Assembly: GCA_002269645.1 (NCBI GenBank) | Contig: NIVC01004999.1 | Span: 1 to 28,868 of the forward strand | Length of the DNA stretch: 28,868 nt | Direction: 5' to 3' | Source of the DNA: Macrostomum lignano | Lineage: Eukaryota | Translations under genes and position numbers: made by a program | Shown: positions 155-27,128 of the stretch, piece by piece | How the letters are laid out: each line of letters begins with the position of its first letter | How positions within the stretch are numbered: position 1 is the first letter of the stretch | Notes under the pieces: model-generated | Seen by the model: only the letters and a program-made list of their open reading frames with translations | The model's database searches: none | Told to the model about the DNA's origin: nothing

Positions 155-193
<39 letters not shown>

Positions 194-227
194 CATCTAT
201 CTATCTATCATCTATCATCTATCTATC

Positions 228-297
<70 letters not shown>

Positions 298-304
298 CTA
301 ATCA
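1..304. repeat. (TATC)n / GATA-type microsatellite in an ERCC6 intron
   Basis: Near-continuous tatc/atct tetramers with occasional tcc/atc variants, ending just before the acceptor caaacag at 311-317. Confidence 0.97.
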
Positions 305-317
305 ATCACTCAAACAG

Positions 318-4915: not shown

Positions 4916-4949
4916 TGTATGTTTGGTGTTGTCTGAAGCAACATTTAAC

Positions 4950-7571: not shown

Positions 7572-8010
7572 AAATCAGGTGTCTAAGGGATCTAGTTGGC
7601 TCACCAAATCAGGTGTCTAAGGGATCTAGTTGGCTCACCAAATCAGGTGTCTAAGTGATCTAATTGGCTCACCAAATCAGGTGTCTATGGGATCTAATTG
7701 GCTCACCAAATCAGGTGTCTAAGTGATCTAATTGGCTCACCAAATCAGGTGTCTAAGTGATCTAATTGGCTCACCAAATCAGGTGTCTAAGTGATCTAAT
7801 TGGCTCACCAAATCAGGTGTCTATGGGATCTAATTGGCTCACCAAATCAGGTGTCTAAGGGATCTAATTGGCTCACCAAATCAGGTGTCTAAGGGATCTA
7901 GTTGGCTCACCAAATCAGGTGTCTAAGTGATCTAATTGGCTCACCAAATCAGGTGTCTATGGGATCTAATTGGCTGACACATATCAAATGTCTATGGGAT
8001 CTAATTAGCT
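7572..8010. repeat. 34 bp minisatellite (caaatcaggtgtctaagggatctaattggctcac), ~13 copies
   Basis: gtgtct at 7681 and 7715 (period 34). Confidence 0.95.
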
Positions 8011-9173: not shown

Positions 9174-10439
9174 ATGCCTCGCTATCTTGTGTCTCTAGCC
9201 CTGCCTCTGCTGCTTCTCAGCAGCTGCTGTTTGCACGGTGAATCTTCTTTGCCGAGCTATGTCGATTTTCTTCACGACTACAGCCGCACGTACGACTGTC
9301 GATGTCATACGGTTTCTTCGGAATACGACTTCTTGTGCGAGATCGTTAAAAAAGGATTAACGGCAGCAAATAGCAGCATCAGCTGCTCCAACCTGCCTAC
9401 AAAAGTGATTGCTCACCTAAACATCAGCTGCTCCGGTTGCAGCAACTGCGTCTCAGTGAACATGCACGAGATGACTCGAGCTCATTATGACGATGACCAG
9501 CAGATAAACTTTTATCCGCCGTCGGAGATTTCACTGAACGATTGTCGGGTCAACAGTCTCAATATTAGAATGATGCAGTTGAGAGCTGAGAATGTCAGCG
9601 TCACTGAAGGCATGGAGATAGCACAGTTCGGTGTGCCACAACATCCGGGTGTTGGTGGCTACTACACCGTGAATGTCACCTACCCGACTGATTTCAACGC
9701 GTCCGATTGTTGGCTGACTTACCTGCACATCAGACGGAGCAGTATGTGGTACTTGCCCGCCTATGTTCTACACAAATGCCAGTACATTCGTAGTGTAAGC
9801 ATCGTTGAGTCGCCGATCACGTGGGTATCGATGACTGACCTACTGGCCCTTCGGTCAATCGATAGCTTGACCCTGCGCAACTGCAGCGTGAGAACGTTTG
9901 CCGATGACGCTTTGTCGAAAGCGCTGACGGCTCTAGATGAATATCTGCAACGAGTTGGTCCGCAGCCAGTCACTGAGAATCCTCAAGTAGCAGAGGCTAT
10001 TAAACGACTGCGTAAGATGAGGCAGGACTCCGGCAAACTGAACTTGGTAATCAATCTGTACGACATGATGGACTCATTCAACATCAGCTTTTCGCTGCTA
10101 TTCGGCTACCGAACCATCAGCCTGGGCAGTGGCTTTTCTCCCTCCGACATTCCGTTCGACGTAGCTCTCAGTTACTTGAACTTGCAATACAATGAGCTGA
10201 CCGAGATCCCTTTTTCTATCAGCATGTTTGGCAATTTAAATGCAATTGACCTTAGTCACAACAAAATACGCAGGCTGTATCACAGCTGGCTGTGCTGGTA
10301 CCCTCCTATACGCGAGGAAGACAAGGCAAACTCTACCAGACACTGCTATTGGTTCAGAGGATCCAGGCAGACTCTGAAAGTGCTGAACCTTTCTTACAAT
10401 CGAATCAAACAAATTGGCGAAATTCAACCTTGGCACGGG
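9174..10439 (+). CDS. Toll-like receptor-like gene A, exon 1 (signal peptide, Cys-rich N-terminus, LRRs)
   Basis: Hydrophobic leader MPRYLVSLALPLLLLSSCC, and LRR motifs LSYLNLQYNELTEIP, LNAIDLSHNKIRRL, LKVLNLSYNRIKQI. Donor ggg|gtaagg at 10440 (phase 0). Confidence 0.9.
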
Positions 10440-10502
10440 GTAAGGTGCATTGAAAAAATATTATTCATATTTTCATTCGCAGGATGGCTGTAGGCACGTC
10501 TT

Positions 10503-10801
10503 CGGCGACATTGTCCCACAACCAACGCTGAGGCCATTCTGTTCATTCCACTGACTCCACAAGCGCTCCAATACTGTACGCAGGCACTCACTCATGCACT
10601 CGCTCACACAGGGTGTGAAGTGCACAAACCCCCCCCCCCCAACCATTTTTCGTGCACACAAGCCCCAAATGTATGAGGCCGCGCGCGGAATCGAACCAGG
10701 GGTCGTTGCGCGAGAGTCAGACGGGCTTACCGCTAGTTCTCTTGATAGCCTCGTATTGGGGTTTTATAATAAAACCTGTTGACAACCCACAATGTCTTTA
10801 A
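10503..10801. mobile_element. Short interspersed element (MITE-like ends) carrying a tRNA-derived Pol III head on the minus strand
   Basis: Minus strand 10750-10675 has an A-box-like TAGCGGTAAG and a B-box GGTTCGATTCC (10697-10687) with a broken acceptor stem. Ends are gacattgtc (10507-10515) and acaatgtct-ttaa (10789-10801). The left part is homologous to the element at 14417. Confidence 0.55.
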
Positions 10802-10926
10802 ACGGACATTGTTCTAAATTCTACTAGCTGTTTCTATCTTCTCGGATACCTTTAAATGACGCCGCGACAATTGTTCTAGTAAAAAAAGATACCCAGCAAG
10901 TTTAAAACCCAACTCGTCACATCTAG

Positions 10927-12405
10927 GTGGCACTGGCCGAGCTGTACCTGCAGAATAATTTTATTGTGAGCATCAATTCGGACGCATTCAGCTATTCGCT
11001 GCTGTCAAAGAGCCTGCTGGCGCTTAACCTCGACGACAACCAACTGCCCTACATTCATTTAAAGTGCTTGAGCCGCCTGGAGACTCTGAGCATTCGAAAT
11101 GGTGGCCTGGCAAATATCGAGCTCAGTTCCATTCCCCAGTCGGAAAGGCTTAGGTGGATCAATCTGACCAACAATTCAATCAGCTCGATTTCCTACAACG
11201 CTTTCAACAATCGTCCAGCCTTGGAGACAATAGATCTAAGGAACAATAGCTTAGAAAATATGTATGCATACAGCTTCAACATGTCGGAGCGTCCAACCTT
11301 AAGCTCTCGTGTTGTCTTGTTAATAAGCGGGCAAAAGGTTAAAACGGTCTGCAACTGCTATCACGTCTACGCTTACATAACAGAGGAAGAGACCGACTTG
11401 GAAAGGACTAACTACCACTATCCAGCGATCCCTAAGCACGAATTGGAAATTACGTCATGCCTATTCTTCTTGAAGGACGGTGCTAACTCAACTAGAAAAC
11501 TAAGTGGTGCATCGTACCGCGAGTTCTTATGTGCCTTCAGTGGCGACTATGAACAGAAATTACCGAAAAAATACTGCGAACAACCCCCACAATCTCAGTA
11601 TGCGTCGTACGCAAATGAACCAATCCCCATAACAGGCCTGACTAACAGCACGTTTGAGTGTTGGGAGACTTGCGTACCCGACTGCAGCTGCTACCACACG
11701 GCCAAGTGGGAGTTGTCCGACCTCAACTGTACCAATATTGATGTAAACATGGTCAGCATACTGCTGCGCATCCCTGTAAAGTACATGTACTTTTCCGGAA
11801 TCAGGGAGTCCGACTATTTCCACAGAATAACAAATTCCACACTGAAATGGGAAACACCAAAACTCCGCGATGCCTTAGTAGTTTTGTTTTTCAACAATAG
11901 CAACATTCGCTACATCGAAGAGAATGCGTTCGTAGATAAAACTTCGATAAAGTTTCTATACTTGGACGACAACAGGCTTGAAAAAGTACCGGCAAAAGCT
12001 TTCTGCTCACCGAATTCAGATCTGATTCGGCTAAGTCTATTGAGAAACAACCTAACTTGGATTGACCCCTATTTGTTAAATTCTAGCTGTCTTCCAAATT
12101 TAAACGAACTCAAGATCAGCAGCAATCCGTGGCACTGTCAGTGTAACGAAATGTGGACAAGTCTTCACAAATCTCTAATTAGTGTGGCGCGCACAACGCA
12201 AGTTGTCCCAGATTTCGAAAGTATGCGTTGCCAAGTGGATCCGGCAATTATTGAAGCCTGCGAATTGAACAGATGGAATGATGCCTGGCGACTTGATTGC
12301 CAAAAAATTCTTTTAAGCAATGGATCTCGCGACTATCCAGTGAGCGATGAGGGCGGACTCGTCAGGGTGTGCGAGCTTATAGCGGACTCGGCAGCACAGC
12401 AGTGA
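10927..12405 (+). CDS. TLR-like gene A, exon 2 up to an in-frame TGA (LRRs, LRRCT, LRRNT, LRRs, LRRCT)
   Basis: Acceptor catctag|gtg is phase 0. Multiple LxxLxLxxN repeats, an internal Cys cluster (CNCYH...CWETCVPDCSCYH...LNC) and a juxtamembrane NPWHCQC. TGA at 12403-12405. Confidence 0.9.
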   Translation: MALAELYLQNNFIVSINSDAFSYSLLSKSLLALNLDDNQLPYIHLKCLSRLETLSIRNGGLANIELSSIPQSERLRWINLTNNSISSISYNAFNNRPALETIDLRNNSLENMYAYSFNMSERPTLSSRVVLLISGQKVKTVCNCYHVYAYITEEETDLERTNYHYPAIPKHELEITSCLFFLKDGANSTRKLSGASYREFLCAFSGDYEQKLPKKYCEQPPQSQYASYANEPIPITGLTNSTFECWETCVPDCSCYHTAKWELSDLNCTNIDVNMVSILLRIPVKYMYFSGIRESDYFHRITNSTLKWETPKLRDALVVLFFNNSNIRYIEENAFVDKTSIKFLYLDDNRLEKVPAKAFCSPNSDLIRLSLLRNNLTWIDPYLLNSSCLPNLNELKISSNPWHCQCNEMWTSLHKSLISVARTTQVVPDFESMRCQVDPAIIEACELNRWNDAWRLDCQKILLSNGSRDYPVSDEGGLVRVCELIADSAAQQ

Positions 12406-13231
12406 AGGCAGATCGTCCTGATCATTCTGTCCTCATTATTCGGTCTCGCGCTGCTCGGTTTCGCGGTGCTCGCTGTCCGCCGTCGACACCGACTGCTGGC
12501 CGTGGTTCGAGTCCTCATCCTCCTCAAGTACCAGAGCAGTCGGCGACTGCAGCAGCAGACATCTCGGGACTCGCTGCCGTACGACGCGATGCTGTGGGCG
12601 TCGGACAGAGACCAGGACTGTCTGGTCGACGTGCTGAACTGCGTGCGCAGCGCCTCGGGCGGAGACGAGCTCGAGCTGTGCGTTCCGGAGAGCTTCCTCT
12701 ACTCGGACCTGTGCTCCTGTCCGCTCACCTACTTTGACTGTCCGGCTGAGGGAGCCAAGTTCAGCGGCAAGGTGGTGGTGGCTTTGTCCGAGAGGTTTCT
12801 CGACACCCAGTACCTGGCTCTGTGTCAGGTGATTCGAGATCTCGACAGCTTAGGTCGGAATCCGTTCAAGGACATCGTGTTTCTGCGCCTGAGCTCGCGC
12901 AGAGTGTCGCTTCAGCGCCAGAGACAGCTCGGACCTGAGGACGTGGAGGCGTTCCACACTCTGCAGAGAATCCTCGCAGGGAGCGACATCGAATACAAGT
13001 CCGTTGACTGGGAATACAGACTCATCGAGCGCATTCGGAACCGAGATCCGGCCGCCGTTCTCGTGTTTGACTCGTCTGTTCCGCCAGAGACTTCAGCGGC
13101 GGCCACGCCCGCGGTAGCTGACCGCCTTGATATTACCGTCGGGACCGCATCGGAGCCTGAAGAGCTATTAGACCTTCCAGGCGAGGGGCAGCCATTAATT
13201 GTGGACGTTGAGCAGACAATAGATTTTATAA
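12406..13231 (+). CDS. TLR-like gene A, exon 2 continuation beyond the premature stop (TM helix, TIR-like domain 1)
   Basis: Same frame as 10927. RQIVLIILSSLFGLALLGFAVLAVRRRHR is a TM with a basic stop-transfer; PYDAMLWASDRD is box-1-like; KVVVALSERFL. Donor a|gtaagt at 13232 (phase 1). Translated only if the stop is read through, absent in vivo, or bypassed. Confidence 0.7.
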
Positions 13232-13339
13232 GTAAGTACACAAATTATTGCGGCACTGTTCTGAAATCGGCTTCAAAACGATGAGCTCGGAATTTCCACC
13301 ATTACCCGTATAATATATTATCATATAACCAATATAAAG

Positions 13340-13752
13340 GAAGCCGCACCATCCTGAGCACGATTCGGGACTGGCCGCCGTTCCACTCGGACAAAGTGCC
13401 GGAGGTCTTCATCCTGTCTGCTCCTGAGTCCGCCTCTGACTCCGAGTCCCGAGCCGACCCAGATTCGAGCTCGAACACCGTCGTCGAGCTCATCGTTCGT
13501 CGCCTCCAAGGCGTTCGGCTCGGCACCAACGACGCGGCCCTGACTGCTCGCTGGCCTGACAACTTCGAGGGCGCCTCGCCAGCCGGCCGCATCAACAGCT
13601 TCCTGATGAAGCGAACTCGCCAGTTCGTGCTGCTGCTCAGCAACGGCCTGCTCAGTTGGCTCAGAGACGAGGCCGAGCTGCAGTGCGAGTTCCAAGCCTT
13701 CCTCGCTGCGAACTCGTTCAGACGCCGCCTGCTGGTAGTTCAGGTTGGACAG
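13340..13752 (+). CDS. TLR-like gene A, exon 3 (second TIR-like domain)
   Basis: Acceptor tataaag|ga is phase 1. EVFILSA...VVELIVRRLQGVRL...DNFEGASPAGRINSFLMKRTRQFVLLLSNGLLSWLRDE..CEFQAF...RRLLVV follows TIR secondary-structure order. Donor cag|gtgaga at 13753. Confidence 0.7.
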
Positions 13753-13857
13753 GTGAGACTCTCGCAATCAGCTGAGTGTGCAGGTCTGAGTTTTGAGTAG
13801 CTTTGCCTCACTGCTGTGTGAGTGAGACATACAGTATCGATCTTTATTCACTCGCAG

Positions 13858-14016
13858 GTGGACAGCCGGTCGAGAGCTCGCTACCGGGCGCTGGCGAATC
13901 AGCGACTGGACGGCGGGGAGTCCGGGCCGGCGACGAACTGGTTCGACATGAGCGCCGAGGACCGCAACGTCGAGGCACTGGGGCTGTGGCTGGATGGCGT
14001 GCTGTACAAGAAGTGA
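13858..14016 (+). CDS. TLR-like gene A, terminal exon
   Basis: Acceptor attcactcgcag|gtg is phase 0. It reads VDSRSRARYRALANQRL...LGLWLDGVLYKK* and is conserved in paralog B. Confidence 0.7.
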   Translation: MDSRSRARYRALANQRLDGGESGPATNWFDMSAEDRNVEALGLWLDGVLYKK

Positions 14017-14416
14017 CTCCTGAGCATGAAACTTTGATGAAGCGCACGAAAAAATTGATAGACAGTAAGAATGTTATCCCAGTTCGACATGTAGAATTTA
14101 AATATTGAAAAATTAAAAGTGCAATAAATTGCAACCGAACATCACTTTTTCATCGTAAAGATCCACCTTAAAAATATACAACATGTGAATTCGAGTGGTT
14201 GCTTCACGTCGACTAAGAGCCACTGGCCGAAAAGAAGAAAGTGCTGGGACTTCCTGCTGAACACAGGCAAAGAGCCGCAAGGCCGCTATCACCCTGGAAG
14301 GAAACCGTTAGCCATCAGATTACTCCTTGGTCAAGCGTCCATCAGCACTGACCTACTGTACACTGGGACCTTATTGTGTTAGTTATAGGCAGGGGCTGTG
14401 TGTACCCTGACGCACT

Positions 14417-14830
14417 TTAAGCGACATTGTCACACAACCGGCGAGAGTCATTACTGCCCATTTCGCCGATTCCCCTGAGCAGGCATACAAGCTCGCGGAT
14501 GCGCACGCAGTCATACGCACAGGCACACACTCACACAGGAGTGCACAGCAGCCCTAACTTCATTTATTGTTAGGCATGTACACTTCACTATGCCTTGTGA
14601 GTTGGCCCTCAATGACGTTAATTACACGAGCAGAGCCAAGCCGAAATTCCAATTTAGCTCCAAAAATGTGACTGCACTTGTGAATCGAGACTGGGCTGCT
14701 GGCACTGCCAGGACCTCAGCGCCAATGAAGCTGCTCAGCAAGTCCTCCCGCCATCACGCCAATCACGGAACAAAAAGATACCCTTTGAAGTGCGCCTTGC
14801 ATAGTGAAAACAGGCGACAATGTCTCTTAA
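14417..14830. mobile_element. TTAA-bounded MITE-like element related to the one at 10503-10801
   Basis: ttaagcgacattgtc (14417-14431) and gacaatgtctcttaa (14816-14830) are 14/15 inverted repeats. It shares gcgacattgtc.cacaacc and ctcacacagg..agtgcaca with the 10503 element. Confidence 0.5.
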
Positions 14831-15049
14831 GCTATCATCCTGAAAGTGCACAAAGTGCATGACATTTGCAAGGGGTCTTGGATGCAACAGTCCCGGCCGT
14901 TAAATGTGTTAAATTGGGTTTCCAATTAAAAGGAGCAATGAACTGACCTACCAACTAGTGTCTCTTTGTTGTCAATATCGAAGTAATAGCCTATTAAAAG
15001 GACAATGATGCAACTGGGGATCGCACGTCCTTCTTTACTAACTCATTCA

Positions 15050-15695
15050 AGCAATCCCCAGACTAACCTTCAAGCAATCCCCAGACTAACCTTCAAGCGA
15101 TCCACAGACTAGCCTTCAAGCGATCCACAGACTAACCTTCAAGCGATCCCCAGACTAACCTTCAAGCGAGCCCCAGACTAACTTTCAACCAATCCACAGA
15201 CTATCAAGCGATCCCCAGACTAACCTTCAAGCAATCCCCAGACTAACCTTCAAGCGAGCCCCAGCCTAACCTTCAACCAATCCACAGACTAGCCTTCAAG
15301 CGATCCCCAGACTAACCTTCAAGCAATCCCCAGACTAACCTTCAAGCAATCCCCAGACTAACCTTCAAGCAATCCCCAGACTAACCTTCAAGCAATCCCC
15401 AGACTAACATTCAAGCGAGCCCCAGACTAACCTTCAAGCGATCCCCAGACTAACCTTCAAGCAATCCCCAGAATAACCTTCAAGCAATCCCCAGACTAAC
15501 CTTCAAGCAATCCCCAGACTAACCTTCAAGCAATCCCAGAATAACCTTCAAGCAATCCCCAGACTAACCTTCAAGCAATCCCAGACTAACCTTCAAGCGA
15601 TCCCCAGACTAACCTTCAAGTGATCCCCAGACTAGCCTTCAAGTGATCCCTACACTAACTAACCTTCAAGCGATCCACAGACTAACCTTCAAGCG
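15050..15695. repeat. 23 bp minisatellite (caagcaatccccagactaacctt), ~28 copies
   Basis: Direct tandem units with small variants (gcga/gcaa, ccac/cccc). Confidence 0.95.
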
Positions 15696-18231
15696 AATCG
15701 GAGTTGATTAAACGCTCATAAGAGCAAAGCGTGACTATGTCAGGGGCAGATGAAAGCTGGTACATGTAGCTCGTAGATGCAGCTATATCAAGTATCACAA
15801 AGTCAAAGGTTAGTGTTGGCGCCAGCGTTCTTGATAGCTATAGCTTTTAAACTTCGTTTTACAACCTAAATCTGACAAATCTGACAATAAATTAATCGGT
15901 GGTAATTACGACATATGAAATTTTAAATATTTTAAAGTCTGGGGATTGCTTGAATGAGTTAGTGAAGGAAGGACGTGCGATCCCCAGTTGCATCATTGTC
16001 CCTTTAATCGGCTTTAAACCAACTGTTTTTACGATTGCACGATGCAAACTTTGTTTTAGATTGTTTTCGCTATCAACCCGTTTGTATTGCTAAAGTCTAT
16101 GCATTTGCCAGCAAGGATAGAGCCTGTGTCAGTTCGGAATTTCAACCTTTGCCAACCGGTTTGTTGTCAGCCTTCTCTCATGACACAAAAAACTGCAGAA
16201 ATTTTTCTCTCTTCGACTGGATACTATCCGAAAAATAGTTGCATACTAGATGACAAAAATAGTTTAGAAGAAAGCATCTATGCTTCCTAACCCTCGTTTT
16301 GCAGTATGTTAATAAAAAAGTGTTCTGAAAACGCCACTAGCTGTACGATATTATGAAGCAGAATGTATGCGCACGAGCTGTGCAGACACAAGAAACGGCT
16401 GAAAGTTCCTTTTTTGTTTTTTATTTAAATCTACCCTGTCTGCAGGGTACTGGCAGACTGGCCAGTACCCTAGGAAGGAAACTGGCAGGGGGTATACTCG
16501 TATTATACTGCAATTGTCTCTTAGACTGCACTGTCTATATATAATTTTCAACCATTATAGAACTAGCATAATAAGAATATGTAATTACATGTACTTGTAT
16601 TCGGATTGGCTCTTCTCCAACTGCTGCATGAACTCGATATGCATGTAAAATCTGAGATGGAGTTTAAATCTGACCTGCTAAATTCAAGCCTGATATTGTA
16701 ATGGACATTATGTATCCTGTGCGACAACATTATCACAATATAAGTTAATTTAGTGCTTCAATTATGCTAGCACGACTCAGCGGGTATGATGTTGCCCCAG
16801 GCGTCAGGTCACTTGCGCGGGTGATAAGCATGCAGCCCATAATCAAACGAAGCTTGCTTTCTGGTTCACAAGGACAGGTAGTGCTGCTGGAAGAAGACTT
16901 CAGCCTCATCAGGCATTGTGGTGAAGGGCGTTGTCCGCGCAGAATAGGGAATCTAGCTACTGCTTCAGATACTCTAACGGCCTCGTTGCTCCCTGGATGT
17001 GTGCAAATGTATTTAGTACATGTTGAAGGCCCAAGTTCTCTCTGTGAAGTGTCTGCATTGTTCTCCGTTGATGAACATTGCAGCTTGAGATCCAGGCTCT
17101 ATGTACGAGTTGGACATAGCCAACAAGAAGATTCAAGTCCATTTAGACTTAACTTGTACATGTACGTCATTCTCGCGTGACACCACGGCATGGTTGTACA
17201 TATTTTTCATCAAGTTGTACCTCGTTAGGATTTCGTCAGATGTCGCAGACTCAGTGGAGTGGTTCGATGGCTTAATTCTGTAGATGCTATTACGGTCGTA
17301 CTCTTGATTCCAAAAGTAAGTAGACCACGATTTATCGTTCAATATCTGTAATGTTTATTAGCTAAATACAGCTTTTCATAGTCTTCTATTGGCTATCGAA
17401 TGTACAATAGATCTGCATCTGCGCCAGAAATATTTAATGACGCTAGCTACAAACTGTTCGATTGTTGACCTGCCCGAGACCTACTGAGCTGTTTTTGCCA
17501 TCGCTCAGGCTGCAGCTATTTTTGCGTAGAACGCTTGTTTTTTCAGGAAATTGTCTACGGAGCAGTAGGAGCAGTAATTGTGCGTACATATTCGAGCAGG
17601 GTTTTTTTAAGACGAGCCTGTCCTCCGCAGGCACGCAATGACTGTACAGTTCCGTGCATGCACAAGAGAGATTAATAGCTAGTGTCTGTCGTGATGTGCT
17701 CAGGTGTGCTCAGGTTTATTATATAGGCTCTCCAACGCATTGCTACGCATACTTAATGATAAATAATATGCAGGAAAGCGAAAAATAAATTCTGCAATAA
17801 GTGTCTGCTATACGAGTAATTAACTTTTTCCAGGTAAGTACGAGTATTTTGTCTGAAACGTTTGGATAGATAAGCGAACAGAAAAATATTTAATCTTGAA
17901 ACATGCCTCGTTTAGTGTTTTCCTTAGCATGATGCAGCTATGCAAATTGTCAAGTCAAGAATCTTCCCGCTTGGTCATTACTTATTATCCATATGCTGAC
18001 GGCTTTTGATGGTTAGTGAAACGGTTTTTACAAGCTCAAAATTTGAAATCGTCGAAAAAGTGTTGCTAAGCTAGCTCCAAGATTCGAGACTTCGATGTTG
18101 TTTCTTCGATTTGATGTTTCGATGTTGTCAAAAATTTTGTCTGGAATGATGTGAAATTCATGTCTACCCGACAATTGACTGCCACAGATTGACTGCCAAC
18201 CCTAACTTAAAAGCAAGCCAAAATTGGCACT

Positions 18232-18430
18232 GGCAGCCAAATGTCACTGACAGTCAAATGTCACTGACAGTCAAATGTCACTGACAGTCAAATGTCACTG
18301 ACAGTCAAATGTCACTGACAGTCAAATGTCACTGACAGTCAAATGTCACTGACAGTCAAATGTCACTGACAGTCAAATGTCACTGACAGTCAAATGTCAC
18401 TGACAGTCAAATGTCACTGACAGTCAAATG
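18232..18430. repeat. 17 bp minisatellite (cagtcaaatgtcactga), ~11 copies
   Basis: cagtc at 18251 and 18268 (period 17); near-perfect units. Confidence 0.96.
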
Positions 18431-19229
18431 ACGATGTTCCGTGAAATTTCGAGCTTGTGAAAGATTTCAAATTCTTGTGATTCCGAAACTTGTGTGGAGG
18501 GCAAAACATCGAGATAACTTTACTTTATGCGACTTAAGCTTGAATGAAAACATTTAATAAAAATGAAACATATAATTTTAATACTGTTAACAAGGACCAC
18601 TGTAGTAGAAGGACTCGGCACTCACGAACCATGGAAAAAGTTTTGAAGGCTGATTTTTAAAGTTTGATGCTGTCTCTTCAGAAACAGATATTAAGATGAT
18701 GAGTTTGCATCCCTACTGCTCATTTGTCTGCCTGTTGCTTTCTTCTGTGATGCATTTGGAGTTCGCAGTAGGCGATTAACTATTTCCAGGTGAATATTAG
18801 AGCAGCAGGTACTTAGCCCCTATAACACAGTATCCATATCTGTACATACTGCCTGTACAGATGTTACAGACATACGCGTGGTAAATTTTGAAAAATCATT
18901 AAGGTTTATAAGCAAATTTTAAAACAATTATGGCATTGTACGAGATAGATGTCTCGTAGTTGAAAAGTCTTACGTTTAATTAGTCTGTGGTACTGGGTAG
19001 CCATTTATTGGAAATAGCTAAGTGTACTAGAAAAAATTGACAGTAAAATGCATGAAAATGAGCAAAGCAGAAATAAAAGGCAAAATGTGAGATCAGTAGA
19101 AACTTGGTATCAAAAATGCGACATTCTGGAAAACAAACATAAATTGACTGAACTCTGAAACAATGCAGAAAAGGTAACTGTAAGGCTATTTATAACTAAT
19201 ACGGTAACACAATAATCATCTTTCTAAAT

Positions 19230-19488
19230 CTGACTAAATTGCTAAATTAGGAATTGCACACCAACAAATAGATTGTGGCTGTACTGACACGGTGTGGAAT
19301 TTCATTTTACTGGTGCGGAAGCCAGTGAGGAGGGGAGTGAGGGGATGGTGGGAAGGAAGGTTGAGAGTAGTAGTGTAGAGTGAGGGGATAGTTAGGAGGG
19401 GAAATGTTACCTGACTGCGCGCGTGCAACTATGTTGATGAAATGAAAACAGGTCGAACGGACCAAACTAATAAATAAATAATAATAAA
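19230..19488 (+). mobile_element. Possible 3' UTR remnant of a non-LTR retrotransposon
   Basis: A purine-rich tract, then a small hairpin ggtc-gaacg-gacc followed by the tail aaactaataaataaataataataaa. Confidence 0.3.
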
Positions 19489-20217
19489 TGGATTAAGAGC
19501 TGAGCTTAGCATCAAACTCAAATTCCTTCAATCTGTAGTGCATAGATATAGTCTACAGATACAGCAAATTTAAGTACTTAAGTACTTATTAAAATTTTCA
19601 CAGAATATTATAATGAGTTGTAAATATTTCCTATCACTACATATAGGCCCTAGTTGTGTTGAACTGCAATTGTTTAGGCTAGGCTATGTTTAGTTGAGAG
19701 AACTAGGACTACAATCATTACAATCAACACAACTTATTAAACCATTAATTTCCAATAAGCAATAAACTGAAGAGATACAAGTTATTTATAAAGCAAAATT
19801 GCATTATACTTAGTGATCTAGGTCAATTAATAGAGTATTCTAAGCTAACATCTGGCTGATTATAGTTCTGGTTTCATTCTGACAAATCAAAACATTAGTT
19901 TTGTTGGTACTAAGCAATAACATTCAATACACGATTATTACAATGCTGTGAAATATAATTAAACCCTCAAAACGCATACAAAGTTTGAATATGGCTACAT
20001 ATTATTGGCTTAGTGAAGAAAGCGAGTAGCAGAGAATTAAAAAATATGGTCGCACAAACAGACACAAAGCGTACGGAAAATCAGCCTTCAATTTTTTTCC
20101 GTGGTTCGTGAGTGCCGAGTCCTTCTACTACAGTGGTCCTTGATCAAAAACACACAAAAAATGACTGTTAACTTCTCCTTCGATTTACAATACCTTGTCA
20201 TAGTACACAGCCAAGCG

Positions 20218-21528
20218 ATGCAAGCACCGACAGAAAGTCTCATACTGCTACTGGCGTGCACTCTGACGGCGCTCCTGCCGGCTGCTGCAGCTGCTCAGCC
20301 TCAGTTGGATGACGATCTGAACAAATACATTCTACTGCCGAAAAACTTCAGTCTAACGCACGAGTGCTGCTGCGAGAACATGATGAACTCGCCCAGGTTT
20401 GACTACTTCTGCCAGGTGTCTGAAAAACCCTACCCGAATGCCAGCTGCATGACTGGTCTGGTAGACTGCTCCGATCTGCCGGGCAGAATCGTGTACAGCT
20501 TGACGATAAACTGTACATCTTACCCATCTGTGACTGTCAATCTGCGAGCTCTCACCGTGGCTCACAACTCAAGCAGCATCGAGAACAAAATCAGCTATCC
20601 GCCACAGCTGGTACATCTAGTGAACTGCAACGTAAACGGTTTCGAAGTTGGAATCCTTGAGCTGCCAGCTGAAAATGTCTCCCTCGATTACGGCATGGAA
20701 GTTGCACCGTTTGGAAGTCCGGATAGGCCGGGCGTTGGCGGTTACTACACTGTTAACGTCACTTATCCGCGTGAATTCCGCCAGGCTGACTGTTGGATGG
20801 TGGAATTGAACATTGAAAATGCAAGCACTCTTTGGTATCTGCCGTCCTACCTGTGTCACAAGTGCAACTCGCTCAAGAACATCTTTATATCTAATTCGTC
20901 AATCGAATGGATCTCGATTCGCGATGTTCTCTCTTTGCATAACGTACGAAGTTTTTCTCTGACCCACAGCCGCCTAAAGTACTTTGCAAGCGACGCTCTG
21001 AGCACAGCTATCAATCTATTAGATAGATACCTGGAAGCTGGAGTGCAAACCGGCTGCATCAATGACACTGAAGCCGCGATCAAAGCTCTAAACTCAATAC
21101 GCAGCCGCACAGGACGGTTGAGTAGCCCCACCCAGCTATACGACACGATGGACACCGCCAATATCGACTTCACCATGCTATTTGGCTACAGATTGAGAAG
21201 CGCTTTCTCGGGCAATAAAACCGAGCCCGCCTGCGACATGCCTGGCAAGATGGCCCTAACCGATCTCGATTTGTCTTTCAACGCTTTGACGGATATACCT
21301 TTCTCAATTAGCATGTTCGATCAGCTGAACCGGGTCAATCTTAGCCACAACAGAATCCGCAGTTTGTACCACGGCTGGATGTGCTGGTATCCGCCAATTC
21401 CCGAAGACCAGAAGAACACTTCAAACCGGCACTGCTATTGGTTCAGAGCGGCTCGAGCTAGTCTGAAGGTCCTGGACTTGTCATTTAACGAAATCAATAT
21501 GATCGGAGAGATACAGCCTTGGCACCAG
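20218..21528 (+). CDS. Toll-like receptor-like gene B, exon 1
   Basis: Leader MQAPTESLILLLACTLTALLPAAAAA. It is colinear with gene A exon 1 (shared PGVGGYYTVNVTYP, IPFSISMF, CWYPPI, HCYWFR, IGEIQPWH). Donor cag|gtgagc at 21529 (phase 0). Confidence 0.9.
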
Positions 21529-22370
21529 GTGAGCTAATTATTAATACTAAATTGTTGGTTATCATTATACAAAGCAATTGAAAGGGAGTCATTGAAGTTT
21601 GGGTTGGTTGTGGCCGTTTCAAGACCCCGCATTCGTAAAGTGTTGGAACACGATGACACTGATATCGCTCACTCTGCGATCCTATCGATATGAGTAATAG
21701 TCGAACCGGTCGATAAATTGAACCTTCGCAGTAATCAGACACCGTTTTATGGCTCAATTATCTTTTCATTTAGCTCTTAGCCGACTACGTAAAAAATTGT
21801 TACAGAATGATCAAACAGATTTTTAGAAACCCATGAGTCGGGCTGTGTCATTTTAATGGTTTTAAGCAAATACTCATTTAAGTAAAAAAGATATAAGCAA
21901 AACAATTTTTGTCTCGAAAAAAGGAAAAAAGTGTTTTTCCCTACTTTTTTCGGTTAATTCTGCCGTCTAATATTTTCAAAGAAACGCAATTGCTTCCCCA
22001 CACTTGGCTGGGCCGTGTCTGTCTACGGTTAAATGCTTTTTCATTTCCTTGGCCAGGCCAAAGAAATGATTGGCTAGGCCAAAGAAATGAGCTCTCAGCT
22101 GGAGAATTCGGCCCAGAGAAGGGAAGAAGCGGAAAGTAAAGCTCTAAACCAAACTGACTGCAATCGATAGCTTTTCGGGCCGGTGGACTAGAAACGCCGA
22201 GACATCTTATCCAGGTTTTTGCATGGGGCTTCCAGTTGATAAAATGAGGATTTCAGGTTAACATCAGTCTCTAGAATGAAGCTTTGCTGTGGGCTCCAAT
22301 CATATGCATGTTTAACTTGAAAAAAATCAGTTAGTTAAGTGTCTCAAAGAATTTTAATATGATTTTTCAG

Positions 22371-24569
22371 AAAAAAATGTTTTCTTAAATTCACCTCTCG
22401 GCTTAGCGTTGCTGAATTTATATCTGGATGAAAATCTTTTGTCGTATTTTCACCTGGAATGCCTGACCCGACTGGAAGTCCTGAGTCTCGAGGGCTGTCG
22501 AATCGCGAATATCGAGCAGGAATCGCTGCCCAAGTCGAAATCGCTCAGGGAAATCAATCTCGATAGCAACAGAATTTTCGCCATCGCTCCGGGCGTTTTT
22601 GAACAGCTTGAAAAGCTTGAGTTTGTTCGGCTACATCATAACAGGCTGATGCACTTTTATGCGAACAGTTTCAAAACGCCCCCAAGATCGACCTTGGCGT
22701 CCAGAGTCATCATACACATTGCCAACCAGAGCGATATACCCATATGCGACTGCAGCCACGTATATAAGAAGATACTGCAGGATGAGGAGTTTGGAAATCC
22801 CCAAAAAAGCTACGTTTATCCGAGGATTTTGCCAGAAGATATGTCCACCGAGTGCCAGTTCTTCTCCAGATTCAGCTCAACCAGAGTGGTAAAGAAACTA
22901 AGCGAATCAAATCAAAGTGAGTTTCTATGTGAATTCCAGGACAATCAAAAGCACAAGCTGCCCTGGAATTACTGTAACGAAAACGTCACTATTATGGGTC
23001 GAGAAAAGTGCTTTGTGAAGTGCATCTACGGCTGCCGGTGTTACCACGATGACGGATGGGATATTTCTGACCTGGACTGCACCCCGGGCAATTCCACAGT
23101 CACCACCGACCTGGTTAAGATGCGATTCGAATTCCCAATCAAGTACATGTTCATGGCCGGACTTAAGGACTCGGAGTTCTTCCGGCACGTCTCCAAGGGA
23201 TCATTTAAATGGTTGAACGAAAGCGATTCAAATGAATTACTGTTCTTGCAGCTGAATAATAGCAACGTCAAATATGTTGAGAAAGATGCGTTCGCAAATT
23301 TTGAGAACATAGTTGTTATTTACCTGCACGACAACAATATTACCAGCATTAATCCGAGCCCTTTTATTGGAAACTGCTTTTTAAATAAAAATCTAAACCA
23401 GATCACGCTGCATAACAACAGAATGAACTACATCGACCCGGCAATAATTAATGGAACGTGTCCTGTGGGCCTTTCAGGTGTGAGCTTAAGCGGCAATCCG
23501 TGGCACTGCTCCTGCCATGGAAAATGGATCGAGCTCCACAAAACACTCATCCAGGACTCTAGAAAAACACAAACAGTATCGGACTTCCGAAATATGTATT
23601 GCACAATTGACGCGTCTATAGTTGGTGCATGCACGGAGAACCGTGAAAATCTGCAATGGAGTGACGTATGCCAAAATGCAAATGATACGGCTAATTACCC
23701 AGTTGCCGACGAAGGCAGACTTGTCAAAGTTTGCGAGCTCATAGCGGACTCGGCAGTGCAGCAGCGAAGGCAGATCGTCCGGATGATTCTAACCTCAGTA
23801 TTCGGTCTCGCGCTGCTCGGTGTCGCGATGCTCGCCGTCCGCCGTCGACACCGACTGCTGGCCGTGGTTCGAGTCCTCATCCTCCTCAAGTACCAGAGCA
23901 GTCGGCGACTGCAGCAGCAGGCATCTCGGGACTCGCTGCCGTACGACGCGATGCTGTGGGCGTCGGACAGAGACCAGGACTGTCTGGTCGACGTGCTGAA
24001 CTGCGTGCGCAGCGCCTCGGGCGGAGACGAGCTCGAGCTGTGCGTTCCGGAGAGCTTCCTCTACTCGGACCTGTGCTCCTGTCCACTCACCTACTTTGAC
24101 TGTCCGGCTGAGGGAGCCAAGTTCAGCGGCAAGGTGGTGGTGGCTTTGTCCGAGAGGTTTCTCGACACCCAGTACCTGGCTCTGTGTCAGGTGATTCGAG
24201 AGCTCGACAGCTTAGGTCGGAATCCGTTCAAGGACATCGTGTTTCTGCGCCTGAGCTCGCGCAGAGTGTCGCTTCAGCGCCAGAGACAGCTCGGACCTGA
24301 GGACGTGGAGGCGTTCCACACTCTGCAGAGAATCCTCGCAGAGAGCGACATCGAATACAAGTCCGTGGACTGGGAGTACAGACTCATCGAGCGCATTCGG
24401 AACCGAGATCCGGCCGCTGTTCTCCTGTTGGACCGAACAGCGGAACTGGAGTTACCGACGGCAGCTGCTGGCGGTTCGGAAAGACCAGCCGCTACAGCAA
24501 CTGCGGAGCTTCCTGATCTTCCTGACGATGAGCAGGCGCTGATTGTCGACGTTGAGCAGCCAGTTACGA
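22371..24569 (+). CDS. TLR-like gene B, exon 2 (LRRs, Cys clusters, TM, TIR-like domain 1); 5' boundary uncertain
   Basis: The frame is open from 22358 through ORF 22409-24598. Homology to gene A starts at EKNVF after the acceptor tttttcag (22370). NPWHCSC, TM IVRMILTSVFGLALLGVAMLAV, YDAMLWAS. Donor a|gtaagt at 24570 (phase 1). Confidence 0.85.
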
Positions 24570-24792
24570 GTAAGTATAACTGCCAGAGCTTTTTGTAGTC
24601 TCACTTGCCCCTTTAGTTGTTAATTTCGTTCCGAAAATTAAACTCTGATACGCAACTCTAGAGTACTACACGTAGCTCGTACATTGAGTTGAATTAGACA
24701 TTTTCTTATCTCGAGAAACTCATGATGCATCTAAAGAAACAATTTTTATTTGTAAAGCTCCAAGCTAACGTTTTAATCAACATATTCAAAAG

Positions 24793-25211
24793 TTCGAGCC
24801 GCCGCCGCTCCCGGTGCGGCTGTCAGTGACTGGCCACCGTTCCACTCGGACAAAGTGCCGGAGGTCTTCATCCTGTCTGCTCCTGAGTCCGCCTCTGACT
24901 CCGAGTCCCGAGCCGACCCAGATTCGAGCTCAAACACCGTCGTCGAGCTCATCGTTCGTCGCCTCCAAGGCGTTCGGCTCGGCACCAATGACGCGGCCCT
25001 GGCTGCTCGCTGGCCTGACAACTTCGAGGGCGCCTCGCCAGCCGGCCGCATCAACAGCTTCCTGATGAAGCGAACTCGCCAGTTCGTGCTGCTGCTCAGC
25101 AACGGCCTGCTCAGTTGGCTCAGAGACGAGGCCGAGCTGCAGTGCGAGTTCCAAGCCTTCCTCGCTGCGAACTCGTTCAGACGCCGCCTGCTGGTAGTTC
25201 AGGTTGGACAG
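24793..25211 (+). CDS. TLR-like gene B, exon 3 (second TIR-like domain)
   Basis: Acceptor aaaag|tt is phase 1. From 24828 it is nearly identical to gene A exon 3. Donor cag|gtgaga at 25212. Confidence 0.7.
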
Positions 25212-25252
25212 GTGAGACTGAGTGAGCAGGTGTGAGTTTTGAGTAGCTTTGC

Positions 25253-25424
25253 CTCACTGCTGTGTGAGTGAGACAGCTCTCCCTCACTGCTGTGTGTGAG
25301 TGAGACAGCTCTCCCTCCCTGCTGTGTGAGTGAGACAGCTCTCTCTCACTGCTTTGTGAGTGAGACAGCTCTCCCTCACTGCTGTGTGAGTGAGACAGCT
25401 CTCCCTCACTGCTGTTTGAGTGAG
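25253..25424. repeat. 30 bp intronic minisatellite (ctcactgctgtgtgagtgagacagctctcc), 5 full copies plus 1 partial
   Basis: Units start at 25253, 25283, 25315, 25345, 25375 and 25405. Confidence 0.93.
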
Positions 25425-25447
25425 TATCGATCTTTATTCACTCGCAG

Positions 25448-25621
25448 GTGGACAGCCGGTCGAGAGCTCGCTACCGGGCGCTGGCGAATCAGCGATTGGA
25501 CGGCGGGGAGTCCGGGTCGGCGACGAACTGGTACGACATGAGCGCCGAGGACTGCGACGTCGAGGCGCTGGGGTTGTGGCTGGACGGAGTGCTGTACAAA
25601 AAGGCTGATTTACGTAAATAA
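25448..25621 (+). CDS. TLR-like gene B, terminal exon
   Basis: Acceptor ctcgcag|gtg. It reads VDSRSRARYRALANQRL...LGLWLDGVLYKKADLRK*, with TAA at 25619-25621. Confidence 0.7.
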   Translation: MDSRSRARYRALANQRLDGGESGSATNWYDMSAEDCDVEALGLWLDGVLYKKADLRK

Positions 25622-26329
25622 TATTTAATTTTAAATTGGACATCCATGGCACATTTTGACTTGAATAGCTCGTACACTCTAAGAAACTAGAAAACGTAGA
25701 CTTAAATTCTGAAGTGTCATATAGACAATTTATATGTACTTATCCGTATATGGTATACGTACTTTAGTTGTTGAGGATTCAAACCTAGGCTACTATTAGT
25801 AGCTAGTATAAATCTTCTCCACGAAGAAGTAGAAGAATTTATGCAGCGAATCTGTGCCATAGACCTATTTTTCGTATTTTGTACTTTATTTCCAGCTTTT
25901 TGACAGCGGTTTCTGGCAGACGTATCCGGAAGACGTTTGTCTTACTGTTTATTTGGTCGTGAGCTTTTTGGTCTTTTCGATTTCTTCATCGTGCGCCTAT
26001 TTTTGTTTTGGAAAAAATCTTTAATCTTTTTTTAAGTTTTAATGCCTTCAGGTTGTTGCTGTCTTATTGTAGAGATCATCACTCGAAAACTTTTATAGCG
26101 AGCGTGTGAATTGGTTATAATTTTCTGGTAACTCTGCCATTTTTTTTCTTAGCTAAAGTACTAATCTTAGTTAGCTTAAAAATATGTACTTCCCTAAATT
26201 TTTAAATATCTGTATTAACAGAGTGTTTTTCATCGTTATCTATCGACAAATTATCCAAAAAGGTCGTGAGAACTTTTAACTTACGCCTGTGTACTTCTGA
26301 ATGATACATGCAGCATATGAAGGAAGGTC

Positions 26330-26939
26330 TCAGTAGTCTATGGCTCTGAGCTGGCAGAGATTCTCGGACCTGAAAACGTCGGAGAGGTCCGCGTTTGGGC
26401 CGAGGTAGGTGAGCCTGTCCGTAGGTGAGCCTGTCCGTAGGTGAGCCTGTCCGTAGGTGAGCCTGTCCGTAGGTGAGCCTGTCCGTAGGTGAGCCTGTCC
26501 GTAGGTGAGCCTGTCCGTAGGTGAGCCTGTCCGTAGGTGAGCCTGTCCGTAGGTGAGCCTGTCCGTAGGTGAGCCTGTCCGTAGGTGAGCCTGTCCGTAG
26601 GTGAGCCTGTCCGTAGGTGAGCCTGTCCGTAGCTGAGCCTGTCCGTAGGTGAGCCTGTCCGTAGGTGAGCCTGTCCGTAGGTGAGCCTGTCCGTAGGTGC
26701 GCATGTCCGTAGGTGAGCCTGGGGCGTTCACAGATGAAGTGCTCCGCATTCTCAACACCGGAGAGGCAGAATGGGCATTCCTCATTGCAGATTTTCCTCT
26801 TGAGGTAACAACCGTGACCCGAGAGAGTCATGGTCACCGCCCTGATGTCCCTGCGGTTGAGTCCAAGTAGGGCCCCTCGAAGGGCGGTGGTAAGACAGGG
26901 GCCAGCCGCAGGCATTGCCGGTAGTCTGTGGCGTTAGAG
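26330..26939 (-). mobile_element. 3' end of ORF2 of an RNase H-containing non-LTR retrotransposon (Cys/His knuckle region), interrupted by a 16 bp array
   Basis: LLGLNRRDIRAVTMTLSGHG...CPFCLSGVENAEHFICERP, resuming after the array as RLTYLGPNADLS. This is the C-terminal motif typical of I/R1/LOA-group LINEs. Confidence 0.8.
26405..26720. repeat. 16 bp minisatellite (gtaggtgagcctgtcc), ~19 copies
   Basis: gtaggt at 26405 and 26421 (period 16); nearly perfect. Confidence 0.96.
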
Positions 26940-27128
26940 GCATGCAATAGTGGGCTCAGCACCAGGCTTACGAGCTACGGTCTGCGATCCTACACACCTG
27001 CACCCCCCCCCTTTATTCATGGTGCAGGAATGGCAGGAGAACTCTCTCCAAGCTGACTCACAAGCCGACCCAGGGGTTCACGTTCCGCATGTGTTCAAGG
27101 CAGCTCTAGGGCTGCTGGACTGACTGGG
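26940..27128 (+). ncRNA. HDV/CPEB3-like self-cleaving ribozyme candidate
   Basis: P1 GCATGC (26940-45)/GCATGT (27087-92) with G1.U wobble; P2 CCCAG (27069-73)/CTGGG (27124-28); P3 GGG/TCC; L3 TTCACGT, identical to the CPEB3 L3; J1/4 GT; P4 hairpin 27095-27119; J4/2 CTGA. Confidence 0.65.

Follow-up and report, generated by a model that had tools for sequence, protein, structure and literature searches.

In our opinion, the region analysed here is, on balance, best explained as a tandem pair of very divergent P-type/mcc Toll-type receptor genes, each with a predicted cytoplasmic tail of two TIR-like alpha/beta modules. It lies in a stretch of 28,868 nucleotides of Macrostomum lignano DNA (the window). 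The parts of this reading differ in strength. That the genes form a divergent TLR-like pair is probable, that they are twin-TIR receptors is possible, and the whole is interesting rather than proven. The two paralogous receptor genes lie in tandem, both on the + strand, gene A at 9174-14016 and gene B at 20218-25621. The initial annotation of this DNA had proposed a pair of twin-TIR TLRs; the tandem mcc-type LRR-transmembrane pair it described stands and its second module, TIR2, matches a TIR profile, but the first, TIR1, is marginal as a TIR and both genes carry defects. Its guess of a flatworm host was correct, gene B matching an M. lignano UniProt entry, and the neighbouring ERCC6 gene that it claimed is real.

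Gene A was modelled in four exons. Exon 1 (9174-10439) opens with an ATG, encodes the signal peptide (MPRYLVSLALPLLLLSSCCLHG) and an N-terminal LRR block with Pfam LRR matches, and ends at a phase 0 donor, GTAAGG. Exon 2 (10927-13231; acceptor ...ctag|G, phase 1 donor A|GTAAGT) encodes in order LRRs, LRRCT/LRRNT cysteine clusters, LRRs again, a final LRRCT, the transmembrane segment (IVLIILSSLFGLALLGFAVLAV, 12412-12477, Kyte-Doolittle peak 2.71, then RRRHR), the TIR1-like module (12580-13041, from YDAMLWAS to VDWEYRLIERIRN) and a linker, in a frame that is broken by a stop. Exon 3 (13340-13752) holds the core of the TIR2-like module, from betaA to betaD, and exon 4 (13858-14016; pN/pS 0.21 against gene B) its C-terminal part, ending in ...ALGLWLDGVLYKK and a TGA stop. 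Gene B has an equivalent layout: exon 1 (20218-21528) encodes the signal peptide and N-terminal LRR block, exon 2 (22371-24569) the LRRs, cysteine clusters, transmembrane segment (23774-23839), TIR1 (23942-24403) and linker, exon 3 (24793-25211) the core of the TIR2-like module, and exon 4 (25448-25621) the C-terminus of TIR2, closed by a TAA stop (25619-25621). In each gene the cytoplasmic tail comes to about 440 residues.

The ectodomain has the features of a Toll-type receptor. LRRs are recognized by Pfam in both genes (LRR_8, E=7.6e-31 for gene A and 1.9e-23 for gene B, plus LRR_4 and LRR_1); the Pfam LRRNT and LRRCT models matched neither product. Only two hydropathy peaks above 1.6 occur in each gene model, at residues 4-27 (4-22 in gene A) and 904-941, the second followed by RRRHR, and the ectodomain has 21 N-glycosylation sequons. 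The first peak most simply corresponds to a signal peptide at the N-terminus and the second to a single transmembrane segment, predicting a type I topology. When gene B is aligned by BLASTP with P0003, an mcc TLR that bears a Pfam TIR, the two are collinear and all cysteine clusters are covered (E=3e-17). ICDCSHVY pairs with VCDCTTEW, GNPWHCSC of the last LRRCT with GNPWHCDC, and CFVKCIYGCRCYHDDGWDISDLDC of gene B with a 24-letter segment of P0003; the LRRNT signature is CxCYHDxxW..DC. The multiple-cysteine-cluster ectodomain described earlier is thus borne out by an internal LRRCT-LRRNT pair and a second LRRCT in this alignment. A Toll-type 'TIR domain-containing protein' in the PDB (8suf) matches the LRRNT-LRR-LRRCT module as well. 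Among the features by which TLRs were counted in one survey (TIR, TM and at least one LRR; PMC8609888), LRRs and a single transmembrane helix are both present, and so is the mark of P-type/mcc TLRs, namely at least two LRRCTs and, internally, a cysteine-cluster pair of LRRCT and LRRNT.

The likeness to P-type/mcc TLRs (the Drosophila Toll family; P0003 and P0004, both with a Pfam TIR) extends over the signal peptide, the N-terminal LRR block, the internal LRRCT followed by LRRNT, the second LRR block, the GNPWHCxC LRRCT and the one transmembrane segment, and in both groups the TIR or TIR-like module begins about 35-40 residues past the membrane. The M. lignano pair differs in that identity is only about 20%, in that Pfam TIR and TIR_2 do not recognize its tail, and in having a predicted extra C-terminal module.

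The halves of the two genes have evolved differently. Their signalling halves are 96-99% identical in DNA; their ectodomains share about 40% amino-acid identity. One homogenised tract (12345-13071, + strand, 96% DNA identity to 23707-24433) spans the juxtamembrane region, transmembrane segment and TIR1, and two more (within 13369-14013, + strand) match 24828-25275 and 25423-25603 at 94-96% identity and take in exons 3 and 4 with part of intron 3. Intron 3 of gene B is expanded by a 30-bp tandem repeat of about six copies (25245-25424), which is absent in gene A. Uniform signalling halves joined to diverged ectodomains suggest either gene conversion or the recent duplication of one part of the gene. 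If the proteins work as established TLRs do, a ligand bound to the LRR ectodomain would make the receptor dimerise, the TIR modules would then meet as a platform for TIR adaptors, and these would feed cascades of the TRAF6/p38/JNK type. Through gene conversion or recent partial duplication, a shared signalling module would be combined with ligand-binding surfaces that are free to diversify.

It could be argued that both genes are pseudogenes in decay, left over from the loss of TLRs in flatworms and with no present function. Both copies in the window do look compromised in the present haplotype or assembly. The splice model first given for gene A is sound at its junctions, all of which are GT..AG with consistent phases, but it overlooked an in-frame TGA in exon 2 (12403-12405, + strand), three codons before the transmembrane helix, where gene B has CGA (23765-23767). 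Because this stop precedes the transmembrane segment, gene A as written codes for no transmembrane-TIR protein; in the present haplotype or assembly the change from CGA to TGA would yield either a secreted LRR-only product or a transcript targeted by nonsense-mediated decay. A spliced model had been claimed for gene B too, and an equivalent four-exon layout was indeed found there, but with its exon 1/2 junction out of frame. The sole good donor of exon 1 (21528|GTGAGC) is in phase 0, the usable acceptors at 22371 and 22407 both need phase 1, and no in-frame canonical exon 1/2 junction was found in the window. Further, about 17 LRR residues that are present in gene A and in the UniProt protein A0A1I8HBV3 are missing at the 5' end of gene B exon 2. 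In the present haplotype or assembly, the start of exon 2 and an in-frame acceptor appear to have been lost from gene B.

These defects, with the retroelement and the tandem-repeat expansions around the genes, speak for decay. However, none of the other exons is interrupted, and they are long (exon 1 has 422-437 codons, exon 2 of gene B has 729), and the tail as a whole has a pN/pS of 0.25 between the genes (p=0.001). A single-base homopolymer error in the A7 run (22371-22377) could account for the junction defect of gene B. Moreover, A0A1I8HBV3 (A0A1I8HBV3_9PLAT; P0001), a B-type copy elsewhere in the M. lignano genome that is 95% identical to exon 1 of gene B and 100% identical to its exon 2 over 22409-24568, is intact at both defect sites. 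On this evidence we find it rather doubtful that the genes are functionless relics.

Our preferred reading, of receptor genes with two TIR-like modules, further requires that exons 3-4 belong to the receptor. Alternatively, it has a single TIR, transcripts end at exon 2, and exons 3-4 are duplicated partial copies of a separate TIR2 gene, unspliced to the receptor or unexpressed. The UniProt model A0A1I8HBV3 does read through the exon 2 donor, ends there and lacks exons 3-4, which is also what the initial annotation had anticipated in saying that automated annotation could miss TIR2. A third copy of TIR2, 97% identical, is found inverted just beyond the 3' end of the window with other upstream sequence (A0A1I8HAL1; P0007). 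With this module in another gene context, a duplicated fragment is one possible origin of exons 3-4. The A0A1I8HAL1 model has its exon 3/4 junction at the same point, but it is obviously chimeric and includes antisense ORFs, so that its upstream context is unreliable. TIR1 and TIR2 are also mutually dissimilar, BLASTP between them returning no similarity beyond a 16-residue match (E=0.81).

On the other hand, exon 3 has an in-frame stop just upstream and no in-frame ATG before mid-domain, so with no usable start it needs an upstream coding exon. In both genes the frame stays open across the linker, although this has diverged, as far as an A|GTAAGT donor, the acceptor phases match (phase 1), and the distance from the exon 2 donor to exon 3 is 108 nt in gene A and 223 nt in gene B, the linker and intron having diverged. 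Across exons 3-4 the genes differ at 9 synonymous and 5 non-synonymous positions (pN/pS 0.19, binomial p=0.002), and judging from this pattern these exons are under purifying selection. We infer that they join exon 2 by splicing via the conserved phase-1 GTAAGT donors, and we consider a receptor ending at exon 2 unlikely.

The nature of the modules themselves was assessed with our own TIR profile, built from 8-11 sequences, of which 8 were tool-derived or PDB-verified; the version made of these 8 gave the same result as that with 11. For TIR2 the match is significant. By hmmsearch it scores 8.5 bits, and none of 2000 shuffles does as well. Among the 151 six-frame ORF segments of the window, exon 3 of gene B ranks first (8.3-8.5 bits) and exon 3 of gene A second (7.9-8.3), the next best reaching 2.9 bits. 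By hhalign, gene B exon 3 aligns in register over 81 columns, from alphaA to betaD (P=0.0018), with a score of 25.7; its shuffles have a mean of 13.1 (sd 2.8, maximum 20.2, 0 of 60 reaching the real score) and its reversed sequence scores 13.9. The alignment keeps the correct register from box 1 to betaE. PEVFILS compares with PDVFISY of SARM1, FVLLLSNGLLSWLRDEAEL with VLSxNFxxSEWCxxEL, and the C-terminal LWLDGVL with box 3, FWxxL. By eye, SWLRDEAEL can also be aligned with DWVHKEI of SARM1 and EWCKYEL of TLRs, where the fourth residue after the W is E; this Glu does not mark TIR2 as a catalytic, NAD-cleaving TIR of the SARM1 type, because non-catalytic TLR TIRs share it.

For TIR1 the profile support is marginal. 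Its hhalign P against the same profile is 0.055-0.066, and its score is reached by 118 of 2000 shuffles with hmmsearch and by 7 of 60 with hhalign, which is not significant. It is collinear with all TIR elements, and its box-1 motif YDAMLWAS lies about 38 residues past the transmembrane segment; box 2 (RDxxPG) is not conserved in it. The automatic UniProt name 'TIR domain-containing protein' belongs to A0A1I8HBV3, a model with TIR1 only. The name probably rests on a PROSITE or SMART profile and, as far as such a profile can be trusted, supports TIR1 as a TIR.

Searches of curated libraries went the other way. The initial annotation had proposed running Pfam TIR and TIR_2 on each domain; neither module matched these or any other Pfam, NCBIfam or PADLOC model, even at E<=10. 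Its claim that the exon 3/4 peptide is a TIR holds as a significant and specific profile match, but not as a Pfam match. Nor did phmmer against the PDB give a TIR. AlphaFold2 single-sequence models of the two modules have pLDDT values of 39.6 and 36.4, too low for use, and Foldseek found no TIR with the low-pLDDT model of TIR1. Outside M. lignano no homologue of either module was detected, a search of 1.84 billion representatives returning P0007 only. We regard it as quite improbable that these results reveal an LRR transmembrane receptor with a non-TIR, lineage-specific tail, for which the UniProt name would be a false positive and the TIR2 match a generic beta-alpha-beta pattern, given that TIR2 outscores all shuffles, its own reversed sequence and all other ORFs of the window in correct register, that the TIR1 box-1 motif stands at the canonical distance from the membrane, that the ectodomain aligns collinearly with mcc TLRs that bear a TIR, and that the UniProt name probably derives from a curated profile.

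Twin-TIR TLRs of bivalves have reportedly been described by Gerdol et al. in 2017 and, as HcToll-2, by Ren et al. in 2014. In these twin-TIR/SPP-2TIR TLRs an mcc ectodomain is followed by two tandem TIRs (PMC8181103, PMC5845394), an arrangement resembled by the mcc-type ectodomain and the two predicted tandem TIR-like modules in M. lignano. However, the two bivalve TIRs are canonical and group with each other, a pattern that speaks for tandem duplication (Saco et al. 2023, PMC10279657), whereas TIR1 and TIR2 of M. lignano are not close paralogues, TIR2 has exons of its own, and M. lignano carries a near-identical TIR2 in another gene context. If the M. lignano twin-TIR receptors are real, they are more likely to have arisen independently than to be orthologues of those of bivalves. 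LRR-only and TIR-only 'TLR-like' proteins, e.g. HyLRR and HyTRR of Hydra (summarised in PMC8609888 and PMC7958881), offer another comparison. Gene A read literally would give a secreted LRR-only protein, and the third copy of TIR2 may be part of a protein of the TIR-only type. Unlike in HyLRR/HyTRR, one contiguous frame spans the LRR, transmembrane and TIR-like parts in gene B and in A0A1I8HBV3.

A MyD88 homologue and a SARM homologue have been reported in planarians. According to a review of planarian immunity, the TIR proteins of flatworms have never been linked to LRRs (PMC7958881). Two surveys found Platyhelminthes to be without TLRs (PMC8609888, with an explicit count of 0 for M. lignano, and PMC10279657), in agreement with what the initial annotation had stated, and one of the two used M. 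lignano to date the loss early in flatworms. We tentatively propose, with slightly less than even confidence, that M. lignano, from an early-branching flatworm lineage, keeps genuine Toll-family receptors whose TIRs lie beyond Pfam detection, and that the published loss at the base of Platyhelminthes, which rests on the count of 0 for M. lignano, is an artefact caused by truncated gene models and by the sensitivity of the profiles. By the same proposal a second, unrelated TIR was gained independently of bivalves, and the signalling half was kept uniform by gene conversion.

If this is true, the inferred loss of TLRs in flatworms would shift or vanish, and strongly divergent members of the family would be escaping censuses based on TIR profiles. 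The orphan MyD88/TRAF6/p38 components of flatworms would gain a candidate upstream receptor, and this in a species that serves as a genetically tractable model of regeneration. How immune receptor families diversify is a further question, on which both the two-module tail and the concerted evolution seen in the signalling half may bear.

The paralogues that stand in tandem on the plus strand, gene A (9174-14016) and gene B (20218-25621), are almost certainly a pair of leucine-rich repeat (LRR) transmembrane receptors. The window is of eukaryotic character: its exons are rich in GC, its introns in AT, and minisatellites are numerous. The initial annotation gave gene A four exons (9174-10439, 10927-13231, 13340-13752 and 13858-14016), and this model holds, with GT..AG at all three introns and phases in agreement. 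A parallel model of gene B places exon 1 at 20218-21528, the end of exon 2 at 24569, exon 3 at 24793-25211 and exon 4 at 25448-25621, all on the plus strand; its TAA stop (25619-25621) coincides with the end previously assigned to the pair, 25621. In each model hydropathy reveals exactly two hydrophobic segments: a signal peptide at the N-terminus and a single transmembrane helix with RRRHR after it. Pfam LRR families match both ectodomains strongly (LRR_8, E=1.9e-23 and 7.6e-31), and each ectodomain bears 21 N-glycosylation sequons.

The open reading frame of gene B exon 2 is 100% identical to UniRef A0A1I8HBV3_9PLAT, a 'TIR domain-containing protein' of Macrostomum lignano, so the earlier guess that the host is a flatworm was right. 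Exon 1 of A0A1I8HBV3 is ~95% identical to that of gene B and the record is intact at both sites where the copies of the window are defective; judged by sequence, the record is another copy or allele of gene B. Its C-terminus (...VEQPVTSKYNCQSFL) comes from reading through the exon 2 donor, and for that reason it lacks exons 3-4, just as the initial annotation had forecast in saying that automated annotation may miss the second TIR-like module. The Pfam domains precomputed for it are all LRR.

Upstream of the pair lies an ERCC6/CSB orthologue, a neighbour already named from the sequence and now recovered by protein match: a C-terminal helicase exon at ~312-431 (plus strand) aligns to residues 942-981 of human ERCC6 (E=2.5e-16), and further fragments extend to ~3600, the 3' part being interspersed with large minisatellite arrays. 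Such arrays are unusually dense here; their periods range from 4 to 53 bp, their copy numbers reach 37, and they occupy several kb of the window (24-300, 751-1816, 2307-2951, 3641-5737, 7572-8010, 15037-15699, 18228-18430 and 26405-26721). A GC-skew dip at 15037-15699 is accounted for by the array at that place.

Among animal proteins the best relatives found were P0003 and P0004 (E about 1e-13), each with a Pfam TIR domain. Aligned by BLASTP (E=3e-17), A0A1I8HBV3 and P0003 are collinear from the first LRRCT, where ICDCSHVY pairs with VCDCTTEW, through the LRRNT signature CFVKCIYGCRCYHDDGWDISDLDC with its P0003 counterpart and the second LRR block, to the last LRRCT, where GNPWHCSC pairs with GNPWHCDC. 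The membrane-proximal module of the ectodomain is matched by PDB 8suf, a Toll-type 'TIR domain-containing protein'; the remaining PDB matches to the ectodomain are generic LRR proteins. The collinear cysteine clusters and the 8suf match support the multiple-cysteine-cluster (P-type, Drosophila Toll-like) architecture that had been proposed, and homology of the ectodomain with the Toll type is, in our opinion, highly probable.

Membership of the TLR family by the usual definition rests on the TIR call in the cytoplasmic tail, which statistics support for TIR2, the module encoded by exons 3-4, and which is suggestive for TIR1, the module within exon 2. Standard profiles do not help: neither the whole tail nor TIR1 or TIR2 in isolation had a match at E<=10 in Pfam (including the TIR and TIR_2 models to which the initial annotation had pointed), PADLOC or NCBIfam, and phmmer against PDB found no TIR. 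Single-sequence AlphaFold2 models had a pLDDT of 39.6 (TIR1) and 36.4 (TIR2), too low to be informative on fold, and Foldseek with that TIR1 model returned uninformative weak alpha/beta-barrel matches only (E>0.1); we do not count either outcome against a TIR fold. We also discarded the -glob mode of hhalign, whose end-to-end alignments were meaningless.

We thus refer to a small TIR profile of our own, built from three TLR TIRs of the homologue search, TLR1 and TLR2 from PDB alignments, and MyD88, MAL and SARM1, the last three confirmed as full-length PDB matches (about 320-330 bits). With hmmsearch TIR2 scored 8.5 bits against it, a value reached by 0 of 2000 shuffles. Among the 151 six-frame stop-to-stop segments of at least 60 residues, exon 3 of gene B came first (8.3 bits) and exon 3 of gene A second (7.9), the next-best segment of the window scoring 2.9. 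In hhalign TIR2 aligned over 81 columns, from alphaA to betaD and in the correct register (P=0.0018); its score of 25.7 compares with a mean of 13.1 for shuffles (sd 2.8, maximum 20.2, 0 of 60 as good) and 13.9 for the reversed sequence. By eye one can recognize PEVFILS (PDVFISY in SARM1), FVLLLSNGLLSWLRDEAEL as the VLSxNFxxSEWCxxEL motif, and a C-terminal LWLDGVL that resembles box 3. TIR2 is thus probably a TIR domain.

TIR1 is the marginal case. It scored 0.4-2.8 bits in hmmsearch, with 118 and 14 of 2000 shuffles as high for two versions of the profile, and P=0.055-0.066 in hhalign, where 7 of 60 shuffles did as well. A box 1, YDAMLWAS, stands ~38 residues past the membrane and is followed by LELCV, KVVVALSERFL, IVFLRL and VDWEYRL, so that every TIR element is collinear. 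TIR1 is also the sole candidate region for the TIR call that underlies the UniProt name of A0A1I8HBV3. We lean towards TIR1 being a TIR as well, slightly less firmly than for TIR2; of the twin TIRs claimed in the initial annotation, the second has gained statistical support and the first stays at the level of a suggestion.

Do exons 3-4 belong to the receptor at all? The linker between TIR1 and the exon 2 donor has diverged beyond BLAST detection, and its frame is open in both genes. In both it continues to a ..LIVDVEQ.. motif, which is conserved, and to a phase-1 donor, A|GTAAGT, whose phase the exon 3 acceptors match. Exon 3 itself cannot start a protein: a stop in its own frame lies immediately 5' of it, and the frame offers no ATG until mid-domain. 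Differences between A and B in exons 3-4 are 9 synonymous and 5 non-synonymous (pN/pS 0.19, p=0.002), and in the whole tail 13 and 10 (pN/pS 0.25, p=0.001). The frame and phase of the linker, the missing start and the low pN/pS all favour exons 3-4 being part of the receptor.

What complicates this, or counts against it, comes from A0A1I8HAL1, the one real relative returned by an exhaustive HMMER search with exon 3 (1.84 billion representatives), a search that added no alignment depth; three low-complexity repeat proteins in its output were rejected as spurious. A0A1I8HAL1 is a chimeric M. lignano model of 2297 residues in which the exon 3+4 module is 97% identical and spliced at the same exon 3/4 point, while upstream of it stands a different sequence (..DEDRLFERKFKAELVQAILSAIRDWPPF). 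The record maps to the minus strand of the window, where it crosses the retroelement (26.2-28.6 kb) and runs antisense to the gene B tail, so a third TIR2 copy must sit just past the 3' end (>28868) in inverted orientation. The TIR2 module thus occurs in more than one context. Even so, we consider it likely that exon 2 is spliced to exon 3.

Other parts of A0A1I8HAL1 are C2H2 zinc fingers, retroelement ORFs and antisense ORFs of gene B. Long antisense ORFs lie over the GC-rich tail exons (13321-13767, 12912-13241 and 24773-25102, all minus strand); they were built into A0A1I8HAL1, an annotation artefact and no gene. The retroelement is a degenerate remnant (26202-28622, minus strand) whose RNase H match is weak (E=0.009), tail-to-tail with gene B on its downstream side, and its ORF contains a TDRLTYGQAHLRTGSP array encoded by a 16-bp repeat.

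Genes A and B form a mosaic. The transmembrane segment and TIR1 (12345-13071 in A, 23707-24433 in B) share 96% DNA identity, and exon 3, part of intron 3 and exon 4 share 94-96%, whereas the ectodomains share 39.7% protein identity and no alignment is possible for the linker and intron 2. Such a pattern suggests gene conversion or a recent partial duplication of the signalling half, with the ligand-binding half diversifying. Intron 3 of gene B is expanded by a 30-bp tandem repeat (~6 copies, 25245-25424), of which intron 3 of gene A has a single copy-like stretch.

Both copies in the window are apparently compromised. In gene A the frame is interrupted by a TGA at 12403-12405, three codons upstream of the transmembrane helix, which the initial annotation overlooked. 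The predicted product of A would be a secreted 914-residue LRR ectodomain, not a membrane receptor, or else its transcript would be subject to nonsense-mediated decay. Selenocysteine or other recoding is unsupported and was rejected, since the homologous codon of gene B is CGA (23765-23767, Arg) and CGA>TGA is a CpG transition. The tail 3' of the stop is 97-99% identical to B with low pN/pS, so the stop must be of very recent origin, or confined to one allele, or removed and formed anew by conversion.

Gene B has a single good donor for exon 1, 21528|GTGAGC, and it is of phase 0; each of the two usable acceptors ahead of the exon 2 ORF (22371 and 22407) requires a phase-1 donor. A search for an in-frame canonical splice at this junction found none; the frame could be regained only with a GC donor at 21532, which is poor, or with a single additional A in the A7 run (22371-22377). 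The splice phases described for the two genes agree at the junctions of A and the 3' exons of B, and disagree at exon 1/2 of B, a second defect that the initial annotation did not notice. Gene B also lacks ~17 residues (ALSYLILRGNRIMSVNP) of one LRR present in gene A and A0A1I8HBV3, and no hidden exon with them was found in any frame of intron 1. The loss of ~17 codons, along with the in-frame acceptor, falls within 21529-22408, a stretch of intron 1 and the beginning of exon 2. The 11 codons directly before 22409 are unusually diverged (NVFLNSPLGLA versus DAFAYSPLATS), pointing to a complex indel or to the edge of a recombination tract. The defects could be real alleles or, for gene B, an assembly error.

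Twin-TIR (SPP-2TIR) multiple-cysteine-cluster TLRs are an established bivalve subtype (PMC8181103; PMC10279657; PMC5845394, with reference to Gerdol 2017 and Ren 2014), in line with the initial annotation. In bivalves both TIRs are canonical and cluster together, whereas comparison of TIR1 with TIR2 in M. lignano found no similarity between them; orthology is thus unlikely. The initial annotation was also correct that the literature describes Platyhelminthes as lacking TLRs: Orús-Alcalde et al. counted 0 TLRs in the M. lignano genome and argued for early loss (PMC8609888), and Saco et al. likewise report absence (PMC10279657). A planarian review describes flatworm TIR proteins as never joined to LRRs, with MyD88 and SARM homologues present (PMC7958881), and we found no paper that mentions A0A1I8HBV3. 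A true twin-TIR TLR, needing the receptor pair, Toll ectodomain, both TIRs and exon 2-3 splicing all at once, we put at a little short of an even chance; for these sequences a TLR-like reading is nevertheless the best one, and the anatomy is real. The screen of Orús-Alcalde et al. used a TIR hmmsearch as its first filter (PMC8609888), and a screen of that kind would miss genes A and B because Pfam-type TIR models give them no score. Given the premature stop in A and the broken exon 1/2 junction in B, the intact paralogue or allele would be the place to seek the function of these receptors.
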